64,000 bases of DNA, from positions 36,899 to 100,898 of the forward strand of contig JAHLWZ010000682.1 of the NCBI GenBank assembly GCA_020536535.1, given 5' to 3'. The stretch is from Pelomyxa schiedti (Eukaryota; Protista; Evosea). This document shows positions 1 to 64,000 of this stretch, one piece after another. Made by a program: the position numbers and the translations under genes. A model generated the notes under the pieces. The model made no database searches. It had not been told where the DNA came from and saw nothing but the letters and a program-made list of their open reading frames with translations. Position 1 is the first letter of the stretch, and every line of letters starts with the position of its first letter.

Positions 1-3000
1 CACGGTTTTTGAGTCTATTGAGGAAAGCTTGGTTAGATTGCACCCCAAGTGATTTGAAAGTCCTAACGTGAAATCAGGAAGAATTCGAGCTAGTCTTTTG
101 GACCAGTGGAAAACCTATGCGGGTTGGAGTCAAAACGCAAGAGAAGGGAATGATACTTTGCAGTCTCCTACAGAAACTAGCATGCACATCCATTTAAAGG
201 GTATCTTTTCCGACTTTTTCTTCACAATAACCTTTGCAGGAGAGGATATTACTCCAGATGCTCTAAGGCTCCCGAGTCTTGGAGCACTCCTGTTGGGATT
301 TTCGTTATGGGAGGGTTTTAGGAGCAAGGGGAACATACGTGTGAAGTACTTTTGGGGAAGGCAGAAAAGTGTTTGACAAGGCATGCCCAAGGTTTACTGT
401 ACAGGAACTGGCAACCTGAGAAACCTCATCAAGACATACTACGGGGGCTGATATTTCTTCCGCTCTAAATACAATCCCAGCAAGGATAGTGGTTGACCCA
501 ATGGCTTCAGTTCTAGGGATTGTAAAAAATTTGGGGAAAATGTATACATCATCCTACGTATTATCTTGGAAGTGAGAACCAAAAATAGATCGATTCGCAT
601 GCGCCAGGGCCCTGAGTAACATCTTGCCAAGTTCTTTTACAGTTTTTACATTTCTAGGATGGGAGGATATTAAGTAGCTGTAGTGCCTACAGAATCTACC
701 TGCAGTATGTTTTGGAAAATTCTACAAAATTGTTGACAGCATTAGAAGCTGCGTTCTTAGGTTTATCGCCCCAATTGCCTTTAAAAAGTTTCAAGGCTAG
801 TTTGAGTTACAAGACTTACATCCATCTGCTAATGCAAAAATAATTTTATCTGTTGCCAGGGATACAGAGTATTGATCACAAATGGGGTCTCCCACCTTGG
901 GAAAACCAAAATTATGGGGAAAAAGCCGTGAATAGAATGGACTACCTGCTTTCCAGGTGTTGTGCTTGGTGGGTATGTTGAGATGACATTTGCACAAAAC
1001 GAGGGCAGTAGACATTGCAAACCAGAAATCGAGCTATCAAAATTCCCAATAATTGCGGATTTGGGTGCATGGGCTATTGGTATCTATGGCTCCGTGAGTG
1101 CAATAAAAAGAGCCATCGAGTTACTTCAGGGAGGCTGGATATATGCTGGTACAATGGAAAAATAATATCCGTTTTTGAAGTCAACTCGACCCTTGAGGTT
1201 TGGTGTTATGTTGTGTGTATGTAGTTTTCTGGCATACCAGACAAAAAGGGTAGACATAGTTGGTTGGTCATCATCATGACCAACCATTTGTATTACACGA
1301 TAGCCAGTTTGCATACAATTGACGGGAAGAGCATAATGTGCTATCTGAGCAATACTTCCTGTGATATTTCTTACGCCAAGGCTTATGTATCGTTAAGAGG
1401 AACAATAGCTTCTCCTTATTGTTAAGAGAAAAACCTAAAAACGAGTACGTCAAGAGAGCTATTTTCAAGAGGAGCTTCAAACACTTGATCCCACTGGGGG
1501 TTGAATGTGCCCCCCTCTGCTCATAAGGTTGGAAAACTCAACAAACAGGAGACTACTTTGTGGTTTAAATCGCTGGGATCTTGTGGCATCAGGCCCCAGG
1601 ATTTTGACTTCCAGTGTGATTTCCAGTGGCTCAGAAATTTTTGATAACCCCCTGGCACTAGAAATCTAGAATACACTAAACAAATAAAGAGCAGTAAATA
1701 GCTAGGTTACCTTAATATGCACATAGGTGTAAACATTGGAATTTGCTGTACTAGGAATAGTATTCTCGAAAACACAGGGATCCTTTGTCATAAACCAAGG
1801 TTTACGAACATAACCAGATGACCCATTCTGTGTGAAAAATCCTAGTGGGAATAAGTTGGGATACCTTAAATCAAAGAATAACCATCATTTGCCCAGTGTT
1901 CGGGAGTGTTCTTATTGGGGAAGAAAGGCACGATTTGTGTGCCATGTGACCACCAGGATATGCTGCGAGGGAAATCAATATATTGAAGAACTGGAGGAGG
2001 TTGCAAACGGGTCACTGTCCGTTATAGACTTCGATGGCAGAATTGCTGTTAGGCCTGTAAAGTTGCGACTTGGAGAGGTGAGGAAAGCATAAGCAGCTTT
2101 TCTTTTGATAAAGGAGAATTACTGTGCAAGTCCAGCCCATTCAATCCGCCCAAGTTGTTTTTCTTTGAGAACAAGAACATCCCAAGCTTTCACTGTTTTC
2201 CAACATCAAACTGTGTAAATAGAAAAATAATGATACTGTTCTCTGGCATATTAGGCAGATAGTGCCCATGGAGATAGAATAAATTTTGAAGGTCTGGGTG
2301 GGTATCTTGTGGGTGCCCCTAGCTGTTTTGTAAGAAGTAGAAGAAACAAAGAGAAGAAGAACCAGGAGAATAATTTTTCTTTGCAAAGACATAGGAGAAG
2401 GAAGAACAAGAAGTTTGGTTGGTCGTTTGGCTAAAAGATGGCCAAGTTTTTCTTGAAGTATAGTGGCCGCACCTGCCTTGTTTGACTCAACAAAGATATA
2501 ATGTGGCCAAATTAAGCCTACCTGTTGCTCCTCTGTAGCACCTCTCAAACAAATGTAGATGATAACAGGCCATCTGATGTGAAAACGCACAATAAATGAC
2601 AAAAGGAAATAAATCCAATAGGAAAAGTGTACTGTGTGGTTTTGAAGGCATGGTCTTGGAGAAGTGTGACAAAGTGTTCAAACAAACAACACTGGGTCAT
2701 AGGTTGCTTGTCTTTGCCTTCCACAAGACAAACTGAAATAAGTAAGAGTAGCAGCAAGCGAAAAACATGAAATCATAACCTTGGAAGAACTTGACACATC
2801 CTTTGGACAAGGCAGAAGAATACGATTCCAAGGAGCTGTGCCTTGCACTAGAATTGATAAAGTACTGGGAAAGAGGTGCACTCATATCCTAGAGTTTTCT
2901 TATTTTCCACAAGTGGTTATTTGTATTTTTGAGAATTGTGATGGCAATTTTACTTGGTTAAGCTTATGCTGAAGTGGAGCAAAAATTGAGTTTTCTGAAG

Positions 3001-4799
3001 AAATGAGATATTGTTCAAATCCATCCAATTGAAGGGATCCTTCATCCCCATAGGCACCAATGATCTCTCGAGCATCACTAATAGATGATCCCTTTTCCTG
3101 AAGAACCAGTGAAAGTGAGAAACTGATACACATGGTTTACATTTTGGTGGTCCCGCAAGAAAGATACAAGGGAAATTTCGGACAGACTTTCACCTGGGCA
3201 AATTTGCTCAAATAAATTCACGATCTCATCTCTTCTTAAAAGCTCATAAAGTAAAATATTGAACTTTGTGAAATCAAGCCCTGGCTTATTTGCTGCCATA
3301 TCCTATAAAGGACATCACAACCCATAACAAATGAAAAGAAGAGAGTAATAACATCATATAATGTCTTCAGAAGAGCCTTTGTCACTTTGACATCCCTTCA
3401 GGAAATAAATTCAAAGAAGTTAGGGAGTGTATTAGCACATACAGTGTTTTTAAAAGCTCCTTAACTTGCTGTCTGGTCACTAGGGCATCGTCTTGATTAG
3501 ACGTAAGTGAGCACCAGGCAGTTTGAAGTAGCCTAAGTAATGTTGTGGGAAGGGGAAATAGGGTAGTTTATCCCCCCAAACCTACTCTTTGTAAAAATTA
3601 TCAACTTGGAATGTATTTACTCTGATATATTCAAAAGCTTCCACCCATTTGTCCCTCAATTCGGAACTAGAGGCAATAAAATCATGTATGGCCCTGAAGG
3701 TGGGATAAGAACATTGTGCAGGTTAGGCAAAGAACCCTTCACGTGTAACGATGCTGAAGGATTTTGCAATAGAAGCTTCTGCTGCCATTTTGCATCTCAT
3801 GAATGTGTGAGTGACTTGACCTTTATGGCATTCGGAAATCATTGTACCATAAAATGTTACACTTCCTAAACACTTGCAGTCAGCAGGAGTGGTGTGACGA
3901 AACTTCATTACATGAAAGAGTAGTGAAAAACTGTCATATGGGACTTCACATACCCCATAGATGAACTCCGCTGTTTGACCCTGGGAAGCGGAAGAATCTG
4001 TGTTTTTGGTCTGACTCTGGCGTCGTTGGTGGTGTGATTATAATGCACCGCCTGTTGTTACTGTCCACTTTCACTTCGCCCATAACAGGCACCATCTTGC
4101 GACGCCACCGCATTTGAAGGGTCATATCTGTCATCTACATATTGTTAGCCATTCCAGGCCAAAAAATACAAATTACATTACCAATGAAGGTGCACTAAGT
4201 GAAGAAGGTTTTGAATTTGATCTCCTCAGTAAGGCAGCAACCGAACCCTTTCTTCCCTATGTTGTTTTTTTTTTCCCCTGTAAAAAAGAAGAAGAAGAAG
4301 AAGAAAGAGAATGACAAGGGCATTGCAGGCAAATTTATACCCGCGTAATGATGTCATCACCAGAGGTGGTCAACACAGCTGTGGCAGTAGCCAGACCCGA
4401 CGATGCCTTGGCCCCACTGCCGCCCTCGACTACACCCACGTTTGTAGTTCCACTATTGCTGCTGCTGCTGCTACTACTACTACTACTACTAGTACACGAT
4501 GACGACGACGCTGTTGTGCTTGCTGTGCTTGTTGTGGCCGAGGATGATGATGATGAGGTGGTGGTGAAGGACGAGGACGGCAGAGACGACATGACGGCTC
4601 GTGGCGGGGGCGAGGTGCCTGTCCTGGTGCCCTTGCTGCTGCCTGACGAGCCAAACGAGGAGGTGGTGGAGGAGGATGAGGAGGAGGAAGGAGGGGGGGA
4701 AGGGGGGCTGTGGGAGGAGGAGGAGGTTGTGGTGGGTGTGGTGGCTGGGGATGACACTGGGCCCGAGCTGCACAGCCGTGAGGTTCGGCGGGTAGACAT
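1..4799 (-). CDS. Multi-exon fusion: S/T-rich N-terminus, PH, EF-hand region, degenerate PI-PLC X and Y boxes, C2, and TipA/CG9801-type PP2C-like domain; 3' end runs off the window
   Basis: Spliced translation gives PH end (HDFIASSSELRDKWVEAF), X box (QDMSAPLSQYFINSS), Y box (WWSHGTQIV...FFTQNGSSGYVRKP), C2 (GTFNPQWDQVFE; YALPVNCMQTGYRVI), then ISTYP...GDPICDQY...FALADGCNWG...VSVGDCK. ATG at 4799. Confidence 0.85.
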
Positions 4800-60394: not shown

Positions 60395-61410
60395 GAAGGC
60401 TCTTCCCCATGCTCTTGGTTTTTTTTACTACTGAGGTTGTCATTCTATCAGAGACACTTGTGCCACCATGAACAAATGAAGGCAGGTTATTTGATGCTGT
60501 CTTGAAGCACACAGCTTTTTCCAGTATGCTTAAAGAATGTGTGGATCTCATCCAAAGGACCTGTGGTTGTGCACTCCCTCCTGAAAACATTGACCTAACA
60601 TTTTATCTTATTTTCTTTTTCTCTGACAACATCAGCATTGTTGACATCGGGTATCGGCGATAAAGGATACGATAATAGATGCGACTTTAAAGAAGGTGAA
60701 TGTTGTGTGTGTTGCTCACACTTATGAGCCTGCACATGGAAGGTGTAATTCAGTGTGGAAGGTTCAAGTCATGCTTCTCCAGGTGCATGTATGTGCAAAT
60801 AGGCTGAGGTGCAGTTGGTGGATGTCTGGCAAACTTCTCAATGTGGGAGGAAGTGGCTTAGGGGTTAGTCCAACTGTGGGCACTGTAAAAAAAAAAAAAA
60901 GCATGTTTACATTTGTGATTTTGTCTATGAGCAATTAAAAAAGCTTGCAATTTGTAAAAATGCCAAACCCAAATGCAACAACAGGAGATCTCTGTCAATT
61001 TTCCTCAATCTGTGCATTCCACAGTTATTGCTAATCACAAGTTTGGAACAACCAATGTCTCAACAGCCTCTGGATCCATGGCACAGCCTCAGAATGTTTA
61101 TTACACAGTTAACCAATGTTTCTGCCCTGTCTTCCATTGTTCCCTCACAGGCTCTTCAGCATCACCCACAGTGTCATCCTCCTGCTCTTCCTCCTCCACC
61201 TGCACTTCCTCAGTTTTTGGTTTGGGCACTCACCACCAGCGAAGCCACTGAATATTTTTTTTGTAGGATGGGATGTGCCCAGGCACCAACAACAGAAAAT
61301 AATAAGAAAAGACCTTTTTGCCTGCCTTTGGGGGTTGTGACCACACCCCAAGTGCTGGTTTTTCACATGGTTTTGACTGGATCTCCACCCACTGATCCAG
61401 AAAAACAAAG
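60395..61410 (-). pseudogene. Possible decayed gene relic
   Basis: Protein-like fragments (VPKPKTEEVQVEEEEQEDD) interrupted by stops, intron-like T-rich segments, and near absence of CpG. Confidence 0.3.
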
Positions 61411-61417
61411 ACTCTGT

Positions 61418-63964
61418 TCACAGAGCCACGTTGTCAAAGATGAAGAAGTCATGCTCTGTAGAAGAGGGCTGCTGGTCAACGACGAGGAGCTGGTTTGTTG
61501 ACGAGATCCACGATGTCAGCAGCACGGAGGTGCCGGAAGTCGGGAGTGTGTTTCTGTAAGTGCCATCATAAACACCAGTTGTGGTGTCATACACCCCATC
61601 GATCTCCCTGCTGTTGTGTGCCCTTCCAAAGTAGAACTTCCCACACACAACAAATGCAAAGCCTGTCTTCCTCTTGACACGTGGCACCACCCATGTCTGC
61701 AAGATCGCGAGGGAGTCGGGGTCCACCCTCGTGATGTGTATGTTGCCCTTGTTGGGTGGTGCATGCACCACAAACAGCACGCCCCCAGTGTCGACATGCC
61801 AGCAAATGTCCGTGTATCCACACCAGTTCCATGACGATTGGTCTGCGACACCGGCGTTGGGGAGTGGTGCAGTTGCCACTGTCGATCCATCACTCACACG
61901 CACCTTGGTCATGGTGGCGGCGACGCAAGGGTTGCAGTACACGTGGCCGTTGTGCACTGCCTGGTAGGTGCCGCCGGGGTTGTAGGGCAAGTCCTTGAGT
62001 GTGAATTGTCTTGGGTTGGTGTTGCTGATGAAGCTGGTCATGCTTTTGAATTCTGAGAGTTCCTGACGAAAGTAGGTGGAATCCCAGTACACTTTCCCGG
62101 TTGCGTTGTCAACAAACACCCTGAGTGCCTGGCGAGGTGTGATGGAGGGCACCACTGACGTGCCAAGCTGTTTGAGCGTCCTCGCCGTCGTTGTTGTGGG
62201 TGTTGTTGTCTTTGTTGTCACTGACATCAGTGAACTCGATGCTGAATTGTGAACAAGTTTTCCCAGCGAAGAGACTGCACCACAAACAGCAGCTGATTCA
62301 CACTCAAGGCTCACCTTTGGGTTGTTGTCATCAGACACGGTTTTTTTGGGGGATGAACGTTTTTAAAGAATTTCATTGCCAAACATGCCTTCAGTTTCTG
62401 TGGAGTTGCAAGATCATCACGGGATTTGCATGCATTCTCAATCTGTGCTGTGAGCGCTTGATTCACTGAAACAACCTCAACATCAGAGAACAGTGTCATT
62501 GCTTGATGTGCATATCCCTGTGCCTCTTGTGCGATCTTCAACCTCCGATCACATCCCTCGATGTGCTCTTGGAACGTCTTCAGAGTTATTTTTTTTTTGT
62601 TTTTTTGTTTTTTGGTGTCAGTGAAATTGAGAAAAAGGGCAAGTCTTGCCTTATTGGCGGCTTCATTGATTGTTTTCAGTTCAGAGAGCAGTTGTGCCTC
62701 TCTGGCATTGACGGCAGCAACGATCTTGGCAAATTCGGATCTTATATCTGCCCCGATTTTCTCTGTGGCTGCTTGTGCATTTTTGCGACACTCCTTTTTG
62801 TTTTTTTTTGGTTTTAATACCGATATCGTTTACTTGAACAGGGTTGATTGGGCTTCGCACAATTGCCGTGATTTTGGAATTTGTGACTTGCTCCAAGTGC
62901 GACGCCAAATTGGAACAGCTCGAGGCAATCTTCTCCTTGAACTTGGAGCTCAGGTCGGTGACAAAAACCAAGTCGTGGTTCTTGTGCTCAATCAGCCTGA
63001 TGATAAATTTTGGTTTTTTTTCAAAAAGATCGAAAGAGAGNNNNNNNNNNNNNNNNNNNNNNNNNNNNNNNNNNNNNNNNNNNNNNNNNNNNNNNNNNNN
63101 NNNNNNNNNNNNNNNNNNNNNNNNNNNNNNNNNNNNNNNNTCGAGGCAATCTTCTCCTTGAACTTGGAGCTCAGGTCGGTGACAAAAACCAAGTCGTGGT
63201 TCTTGTGCTCAATCAGCCTGATGATAAATTTTGGTTTTTTTTCAAAAAGATCGAAAGAGAGAGAGAGAGGCACGCACGCGCAGTCACGACAGATCAGTGC
63301 CTTGTCGGTATCGCAGTAAAGCTCCAGCTCCTTCTGTGTGTGCTTGGAACAAAGCGGTTGTTTGTGAACTATTGGTGCAGTTGCTTGGCTTCTGAGTTGG
63401 TCGACAGATACAACCTGCGTCGGCGTGAATTTGGTCATTTGGAGGGTGCGGGACCGCCGCAACGAGTGATGGGACTGGTTTGGTTTGGTTACCTTGTGCG
63501 AGGCGGTCTTGCGCGAGCGCGAGTGGTGTGCCTTGTCGTCGTCACACAAGAACATGCCGCACGACGCGCACCACCACGGGGCCTCGTGCCCCCCGCAGTC
63601 CTCGCACTCGGGCGGCGGCACGCCCGTCGCGGTGGTGCCTGGTGGTGGTGACCCACCAACAACAACAACAAGCGGGACCATCCCCAGCAGGCTGCTCTTC
63701 CAAACGTCGACGCTGAACCCTCCGCTGGGAACAGATGCCTGGAGTGTTGTGTTTGTTGTGTTGTGTTGTGTTGAGTTGTTGGTTGGAATGGTAGAATTCA
63801 AGGCAAGGCGGGGGGGGAGTGACACGGTACGGACCTGCGAGTGGCACGCCGGGCACCGAACAGTCGATGGAGAGGAGGACGCGGAGGCCTTGGAATTCGG
63901 GGACGCACCTGGTGCGCATTTTGGGATGCACTCGAGACACAACGTGTGCAAGCATGGAAGCAAC
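61418..63964 (-). CDS. TRIM-like E3 ligase (RING, B-box1, B-box2, coiled coil) with C-terminal olfactomedin domain; 5' end off-window
   Basis: LPCLHTLCLEC...CPAC; CEDC...WCASCGMFLC...H...H; CSKH...YCDTD...ICRDC...HKNH; OLF: LPNAG...WCGYTDICWHVD...GNIHITRVDPDSLAILQTW...FAFVVCGKFY...YDTTT. Confidence 0.88.
62920..63261. other. Scaffold gap (100 N) flanked by an identical ~120-bp overlap; probably an unmerged contig join
   Basis: 62920-63040 matches 63141-63261, and the overlap ends in a (GA)n microsatellite. Confidence 0.9.
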
Positions 63965-64000
63965 CTGTGTGGGTGTCATCACGTCAACGGCGAGGGGAAC

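Follow-up and report, generated by a model that had tools for sequence, protein, structure and literature searches.

The DNA analysed here (the window) is a stretch of 64,000 nucleotides (nt) from the amoebozoan Pelomyxa schiedti (GenBank assembly GCA_020536535.1, contig JAHLWZ010000682.1, positions 36,899 to 100,898 of the forward strand). Positions 61418-64000 on its minus strand belong to a multi-exon gene, with eight exons in total and a product of ~648 amino acids (aa), in which a RING domain, a B-box1-like zinc finger, a B-box2, a coiled coil of ~160 aa and a Thr-rich linker are followed by an olfactomedin (OLF) domain. We consider it probable, at roughly 0.72, that this gene of P. schiedti is real and transcribed and that its product is a cytosolic RING E3 ubiquitin ligase of TRIM-like type, which uses an OLF propeller as its C-terminal target-binding module. 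The observations described below establish the order of the domains, the OLF fold, the splicing that links the coiled coil with the OLF exon, the existence of a multi-locus family and its place among OLF domains.

The olfactomedin domain

A first-pass annotation of the window, made by eye from the sequence, had likened the C-terminal domain to myocilin, and a profile hidden Markov model search agrees. A 306-aa minus-strand open reading frame (ORF) at 61418-62338, which contains the peptide GYTDICWHVDTGG...FAFVVCGKFY, matches the Pfam OLF family (PF02191) with an E-value of 2.3e-27 and a score of 96.6 bits against a cut-off of 23.9. Compared with the sequences in the PDB, the OLF exon matches noelin (E 1.2e-22), myocilin (~3e-16) and latrophilin-3 (~1e-13), with E-values in the whole set ranging to 1e-11. 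An AlphaFold (AF2) model of this exon, made with a 121-row alignment, has a mean predicted local distance difference test score (pLDDT) of 87.7 and a predicted template modelling score of 0.83; its first 26 residues alone lie below 50, and, averaged over blocks, the pLDDT exceeds 70 from residue 41 onward and 85 from residue 61 onward. When this model was compared with the PDB by Foldseek, all 50 of the 50 best matches were OLF domains (of noelin, myocilin, latrophilin and gliomedin), with E-values down to 4.7e-19 (noelin, 6qm3) and target-normalised template modelling (TM) scores of 0.72-0.84 for chains that consist of an OLF domain only, and no NHL or Kelch propeller was found among these 50. 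The five-bladed propeller that had been expected is thus the predicted fold. By AF2 and Foldseek the propeller proper occupies 61421-62179 on the minus strand, residues ~46-298 of exon 8 (61418-62314, minus strand), the remainder of which encodes a conserved Cys motif (LECESAAVCGAVSSLGKLV), the Thr-rich linker and the stop codon.

The central Ca2+ ligands of animal OLF domains, which we take to be the equivalents of myocilin D380, N428 and D478, are replaced in the aligned window sequence by C, F and S, respectively, so that the animal Ca2+ site is not kept. D380 is present in 92, N428 in 70 and D478 in 63 of the 96 rows of the clade that includes the identified animal OLFs (see below), and the full ligand set occurs in none of the 25 rows of the non-animal OLF clade. 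To judge from the alignment, the Ca2+ site is a feature of animal OLF domains rather than of the Pfam OLF family. The position of myocilin C433, which presumably forms the intradomain disulfide C245-C433 in that protein, is Cys in the window OLF and in three of four Pelomyxa rows. A conserved LECxSxxVCG motif, which may or may not be the counterpart of the C245 strand, precedes the Thr-rich insert, with its VCG ~45 residues upstream, in a region that has a pLDDT below 50 and was trimmed from most alignment rows.

Gene structure, splicing and transcription

The exon boundaries were set from joints seen in RNA contigs and from exact string positions, and the summed exon lengths and phases give one frame of 1947 nt, or 648 codons plus the stop. 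All exons and introns lie on the minus strand. RNA contigs splice exons 4-5-6 and exons 7-8. The joint between the TRIM-like part and the propeller, which the first-pass annotation placed at 62310-62390, was indeed found there: contigs from two runs (X1 and X3) skip 62314-62387, with an ambiguity of 4 nt that resolves to a GC-AG intron of 74 nt in phase 0 at 62315-62388 (intron 7), through which the coiled coil is joined to the OLF exon. A GT donor that could be used instead of intron 7 (CCAAAG/gtgagc) and a donor at a gtaaacg site for intron 5 were considered and are ruled out by RNA or by frame.

Exon 1 (MEKRELIAQITCPCCSSFLRDP plus 2 nt) lies outside the window, where contigs C1667 and C1348 end; it contributes the start codon and the first CxxC of the RING, and the N-terminus that it encodes reads MEKRELIAQITCPCC. 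Exon 2 (63835-63964) encodes the second half of the C3HC4 RING (LLPCLHTLCLEC...RCPACHSQ), and the same exon was found by tblastn in 11 other loci. Exon 3 (63493-63738), which is kept in paralogs, encodes a Pro/Gly-rich spacer and the B-box1-like zinc finger (CEDCGGHEAPWWCASCGMFLCDDDKAHHSRSRKTASHK). Exon 4 (63278-63414) encodes the first part of B-box2 (CSKHTQKELELYCDTDKALICRDC), with a PF00643 match above the cut-off, and exon 5 (62861-62996) encodes the end of B-box2 (LIEHKNHD) and the start of the coiled coil. The basis for exon 5 is RNA contig X1 record 5, which passes from 62874-62996 directly into 24 letters of 63278-63301, in frame (CRDCA/LIEHKNH), and so completes B-box2. This contig is identical to the window in exon 6, and two of its exon 5 letters (at 62909 and 62915) are in neither genomic copy of the gene (see below).

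The coiled coil is spread over three exons, and continues from exon 5 through exon 6 (62650-62793), which is covered by a window-exact RNA contig, and exon 7 (62389-62577), which is covered by a window-exact RNA piece at 62388-62579. Intron 5 (62794-62860) is a GT-AG intron, and the joint of exons 5 and 6 is present in RNA. Intron 6 (62578-62649) is a putative in-frame GC-AG intron of 72 nt that no RNA contig directly bridges; it was placed on the grounds that two RNA contigs stop at ~62579 and ~62650, that the segment is absent from deposited paralog proteins, and that in the paralogs the same place is taken by 41-78 nt without homology to it, mostly with GC donors. We note that two of the seven introns of the gene (6 and 7) have GC-AG ends; introns of this type make up 1.59% of those in the P. 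schiedti genome (PMC8887013). Among paralogs, GC donors are found at the same positions in ~10 of 13 at intron 6 and in 4 of 13 at intron 7.

Intron 4 occupies 62997-63277 as written and holds a run of N at 63041-63140. Exact direct duplicates of 121 nt stand on either side of the run (62920-63040 is identical to 63141-63261), the second of which also lies in the intron. Because of these flanking duplicates, the position in an intron and the spliced RNA contig that bridges it, we regard the gap as an assembly artefact from which no sequence is missing. With the duplicate collapsed, the gap falls inside a GT-AG intron with a true length of 60 nt. The end of the window is also the end of contig C682, and 63880-64000 is identical to the last 121 nt of both C1667 and C1348. 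The 121-nt duplicates have the look of overlaps between adjacent assembly pieces that were never merged. A twin of the gene is present on the same scaffold, 66 kb upstream (locus L022, C682:30300-35000), and is 95.5% identical to it in nucleotide sequence over exons 5-8. Its contig piece ends at the same 121-mer, followed by an N gap of its own (1990-2089 of L022); tblastn found no TRIM exons behind that gap, and the sequence there is unrelated. RNA contigs without any difference from the window cover 61385-62016, exon 7 and exon 6, and in each of these contigs the twin has 2 to 16 differences, which shows that it is the window copy that is transcribed there.

RING, B-boxes and coiled coil

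All eight Zn ligands of the RING are readable: C12 and C15 are encoded by exon 1, and C-x-H-x2-C-x2-C...C-x2-C by exon 2. The exon 2 ORF alone has a Pfam RING score of 19 bits, and a spliced paralog (P0002, see below) has a zf-C3HC4 match of 21.7 bits against a cut-off of 21. The unspliced ORF 63142-63963 contains a B-box match (PF00643) of 30.9 bits against a cut-off of 24.1 together with the second half of the RING, and the PF00643 matches of the spliced paralogs P0001 and P0002 reach 42.7 and 44.5 bits (E 6e-11 and 2e-11), over profile positions 2-40 of 42. The proposed RING-Bbox1-Bbox2-coiled-coil module therefore holds for the RING ligands and for B-box2; its B-box1 is recognised by pattern only, C-x2-C-x8-C-x2-C-x4-C-x2-D...H...H read directly from the sequence, with Pfam matches below threshold.

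Residues 165-350 of paralog P0002 are predicted to form a homodimer with a score of 0.59, the best control having 0.00; in calibration of the tool the mark was reached by 21 of 30 proteins solved as one-chain pairs and by 0 of 23 single chains. Three runs share at least 89% of the predicted contacts, with a pLDDT of at least 84, and the contact pairs 274:263, 296:238 and 241:292 describe an antiparallel arrangement like that of TRIM coiled coils. The N-terminus MEKRELIAQITCPCC, read by eye, has no hydrophobic leader or signal peptide and the RING begins at residue 12. The N-terminal RING and zinc fingers and this lack of a signal peptide point to a cytosolic or nuclear location, in keeping with the cytosolic protein first envisaged.

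The gene family in Pelomyxa schiedti

Genome-wide, 23 OLF matches lie above the Pfam cut-off, and at least 13 loci, the window included, have the same exon order (RING, B-box1, B-box2a, B-box2b, two coiled-coil exons and OLF). The further loci with this order, found by tblastn with the window exons, are L023-L030 and L032-L034, and L004 has it from exon 3 on. Family members form a head-to-head pair on C1061 and a group of four copies on C854. The OLF exons are open, with no stop codons, in all 14 that were compared; the pairwise ratio of nonsynonymous to synonymous substitution rates (dN/dS) is 0.35-0.63, and the positions that vary among the 14 gather in the linker and the loops. The deposited paralog KAH3745893.1 (P0002, 644 aa) has the RING, a B-box and the OLF domain in one protein, and carries the automatic GenBank name "E3 ubiquitin-protein ligase TRIM71".

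OLF copies that are partial, frame-split or lack TRIM exons upstream are also present, at L029 (C575) 2348-3281, L034 (C143) 2235-3049, L035 (C4) and L037 (C867). The copy on C575 is a second OLF region directly behind a complete gene, and tblastn showed no TRIM exons upstream of the OLF matches on C4 and C867. The family thus seems, from these sequences, to include decaying or differently built members. Another protein, P0003 (1061 aa), whose OLF part is 79% identical to that of the window, has the last 165 residues of an OLF domain at its start, followed by DEP and RasGEF domains; it is probably two neighbouring genes that were fused by annotation. B-box genes as a whole are much expanded in P. 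schiedti, with at least 150 scored matches above the Pfam cut-off out of 309 candidates. Seven large B-box ORFs that were sampled (for example L038:1851-4070 and L040:1283-3337) encode a RING, B-box1 and B-box2, and Pfam recognised no C-terminal domain in these seven.

Relatives of the OLF domain outside Pelomyxa

In a HMMER search of 1.84 billion cluster representatives, only 249 proteins had an E-value of 0.001 or better. In a tree of 121 OLF domains the four Pelomyxa rows form one clade (support 100), nested in a clade of 25 rows (support 98) that is separate from the 96 rows including the identified animal OLFs; the phylogeny thus places the Pelomyxa domains in a non-animal clade. The 25-row clade also contains a Stig1 protein from a Myxococcales metagenome-assembled genome (MAG) and its metagenomic kin, PEP-CTERM OLFs, BTB-BACK-OLF proteins and a B-box protein, P0124. 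In the Myxococcales MAG type (MSP62909.1) the OLF domain is accompanied by a Cys-rich Stig1 repeat; proteins of this kind are up to 44% identical to the window OLF and have the motif GYSDICFYVD where the window has GYTDICWHVD. The PEP-CTERM OLFs include Candidatus Eisenbacteria MCK4303180.1. The bacterial OLFs P0009, P0010, P0057, P0070, P0081, P0119, P0128 and P0134 occur in these two secreted contexts, with Stig1 repeats or PEP-CTERM, and all of them lack the full Ca2+ set.

Two of the 25-row clade proteins have a BTB-BACK-OLF layout: P0017, from the rhizarian Mataza sp. D1 (MMETSP/EukProt EP00462 P024806), and P0021 (L045, run ERR11260144), the contig of which has no poly(A) tail. This is the layout of Kelch-like Cul3 adaptors with OLF replacing Kelch. 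Both share a 14-row group of the tree with the Pelomyxa OLFs, and the branching order within that group is unsettled. P0124 has two B-boxes, a helical region and an OLF domain, and its best identity to a Pelomyxa protein is 34%, which indicates that it is not from Pelomyxa. The P0124 gene and a second such gene are arranged in tandem, without introns and without a RING; the loci concerned are L018:116-4083 and L019 (contig QFZN01006693.1 of GCA_003202625.1; run SRR23300986), with a GC content of 57%. The P0124 contig is 4.2 kb long and starts with a C4A4 repeat, and a single-gene version of 2117 nt is bounded by C4A4 repeats on one side and G4T4 repeats on the other, which marks it as a spirotrich-ciliate nanochromosome. 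Among the 179 proteins that were fetched, B-boxes are found only in those of Pelomyxa and the ciliate, and BTB only in P0017 and P0021. As the P0124 branch in the tree is long, the ciliate, Mataza and Pelomyxa fusions may have one origin or several. Apart from one shark OLF, a word-index protein search gave six Pelomyxa paralogs and nothing else, and a look-up in the ESM Atlas gave only chordate OLF clusters.

By sequence comparison, then, the OLF domain of the window is a non-animal subtype without the central Ca2+ ligands, and its nearest kin are secreted bacterial OLFs and OLFs on protist ligase scaffolds. The first-pass annotation had described OLF domains as known mainly from extracellular modules of animal proteins and proposed a non-metazoan intracellular role for the fold; the intracellular setting outside animals is supported, and OLF is not limited to animals, as bacteria and protists are members of the same clade.

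Function and alternative explanations

If the protein works as a TRIM-like ligase, its coiled coil would form an antiparallel dimer, the RING would recruit a ubiquitin-loaded E2, and the two OLF propellers would bind a target for ubiquitination, or else a cargo or ligand. Several points weigh against so complete a reading. Ligase activity and the role of the OLF domain as substrate receptor are suggested by analogy with TRIM biology. B-box1 has sub-threshold Pfam matches (ANCHR-like_BBOX at 15 bits, E 0.027; zf-UBP at 17.5 bits, E 0.005), and the dimer score was obtained with a paralog only and may reflect the predictor's memory of solved TRIM coiled coils. Exon 1 had to be placed on another contig, and because the twin breaks at the same 121-mer and there are two alternative 5' contigs, exons 2-4 (63141-64000) are probably a collapsed consensus of the window copy and the twin. 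None of the RNA contigs spans the gene from RING to OLF; both of the junction-spanning contigs are a mosaic of letters from the window and from its 95.5%-identical twin, and X1 record 5 apparently has a T-run at 62872-62875 that is 2 nt shorter and would shift the frame. A third allele or a further paralog may be the source of the short T-run, or the contig may be in error.

It is accordingly a serious, though minority, possibility that the window gene is an assembly chimera, in which the RING/B-box piece 63141-64000 derives from the twin or is a consensus of both copies, so that the locus may not encode exactly the protein described here. The halt of the twin at the shared 121-mer before its own gap, with no TRIM exons found beyond, the two 5' contigs that overlap the end of the window, and the blending of the two copies in RNA contigs all favour this. 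Such a chimera would affect the assignment of letters to copies and not the architecture, however: the RNA contig with a window-exact exon 6 runs on through exon 5 into exon 4, and at least 11 other loci carry TRIM and OLF exons on uninterrupted DNA, which leaves the architecture untouched by any collapse. It is a good deal less likely that the architecture is real and the protein is not a working ligase, and that its coiled coil and OLF domain make it a dimeric scaffold or a receptor for cargo (in autophagy, for instance, or in vesicle or symbiont handling), with the RING and B-boxes used for assembly only. The marginal Pfam scores of the RING (19 bits here; in P0002 21.7 bits, with a cut-off of 21) would fit such a protein, as would the ciliate kin, whose B-boxes, coiled coil and OLF domain show that the module can exist free of a RING; against it stand the retention of all eight RING Zn ligands and the finding of the RING exon at 11 other loci. 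In animals OLF domains are extracellular and often follow a coiled coil, and the assembly was made from single cells carrying bacteria (PMC8887013), which could suggest that the OLF part belongs to a secreted olfactomedin of animal style, encoded by a gene of its own beside a TRIM gene, or that it is contaminant DNA. We consider this very improbable, since the coiled-coil and OLF exons are joined in spliced RNA, a signal peptide is absent, the OLF exon lacks a suitably placed start codon of its own, and the gene has spliceosomal introns, a 100-kb amoeba scaffold and fourteen paralogs. In the tree, moreover, the Pelomyxa OLFs group with one another (support 100) and not within the clade of the identified animal OLFs.

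The preferred reading, a TRIM-like ligase with an OLF receptor, invites some speculation as to its use. Several prokaryotic endosymbionts live with P. schiedti (PMC10579272). One may guess that a tandem, fast-diverging family with variable loops, in a phagotroph that houses endosymbionts, recognises variable targets and has an immune-like role. A still wider scenario, which we put forward tentatively and think unlikely to hold in full, is that OLF did not originate as an animal extracellular module but is an older recognition propeller, derived from or shared with secreted bacterial OLFs, which protists have repeatedly recruited to ligase scaffolds (TRIM-like in Pelomyxa, B-box/coiled-coil in the ciliate and BTB-BACK in Mataza); in that case the family in Pelomyxa, with its 13 or more tandemly expanded members, would provide a cell-autonomous repertoire of receptors directed at prey bacteria or endosymbionts, much as the TRIM-SPRY expansions do in vertebrates.

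The molecular function of the OLF propeller is poorly understood, and mutations in myocilin cause glaucoma. If the proposed function is true, an intracellular OLF domain that lacks the Ca2+ site would make the question of what this fold binds more accessible to study. TRIM-type architecture would be extended to a large lineage-specific family in an amoebozoan, where before a single TRIM37-like gene was discussed for Dictyostelium, and the occurrence of OLF on three ligase-type scaffolds in three eukaryotic supergroups, beside secreted bacterial kin, would be a clean case of domain recruitment and possibly of gene transfer.

Comparison with known systems

A literature search found no paper that joins the olfactomedin domain, TRIM and B-box. 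For olfactomedin and Amoebozoa it found only an unrelated paper on a G-protein-coupled receptor, and nothing relevant for olfactomedin with BTB or with ciliates. The automatic GenBank names ("TRIM71", "Olfactomedin-like domain") mean that the pieces had been seen by the pipeline, not that the protein had been described.

The order of RING, B-box1-like finger, B-box2, coiled coil and C-terminal binding domain is that of the animal TRIM/RBCC E3 ligases (such as TRIM71/LIN-41 and TRIM5; classes C-I to C-XI). A long antiparallel coiled-coil dimer like theirs is predicted for a paralog, and the Pelomyxa family is likewise lineage-specific, expanded and tandem-arrayed. The Pelomyxa protein differs in that its C-terminal domain is OLF and its host is an amoebozoan, and the likeness described here is one of architecture. 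To our knowledge the C-terminal domains used to classify TRIM proteins (SPRY, NHL, filamin, COS-FN3, PHD-bromo, MATH, ARF and transmembrane) do not include OLF. Outside animals only TRIM37-like genes have been reported, in several eukaryotes (Marín 2012, PMC3503706), and a single TRIM, which is TRIM37-like, has been described in Dictyostelium (PMC5758549).

With the animal OLF proteins (myocilin, noelin/OLFM1, latrophilin and gliomedin) the Pelomyxa protein shares the Pfam OLF domain and its five-bladed propeller, with TM scores of up to 0.84, and like myocilin and noelin it has a coiled coil on the N-terminal side of this domain. Unlike them it has no signal peptide and has an N-terminal RING and B-boxes; its OLF domain is 19-25% identical to theirs, its Ca2+ side-chain ligands are replaced, and it belongs to a separate clade (support 98). 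The bacterial OLF proteins are in the same OLF clade, also lack the Ca2+ ligands and reach 44% identity, but are secreted or surface proteins with Stig1 or PEP-CTERM and without RING, B-box or coiled coil. Parallels in architecture are the BTB-BACK-OLF proteins (P0017 of Mataza and P0021) and the ciliate B-box-coiled-coil-OLF proteins, in which an OLF domain of the same clade forms the C-terminal end of a scaffold of ubiquitin-ligase type. In Mataza this scaffold is BTB-BACK, of the Cul3-adaptor type, in place of RING and B-box, whereas in the ciliate the OLF domain follows two B-boxes and a helical region, and the genes lack a RING and introns and lie on telomere-capped nanochromosomes.

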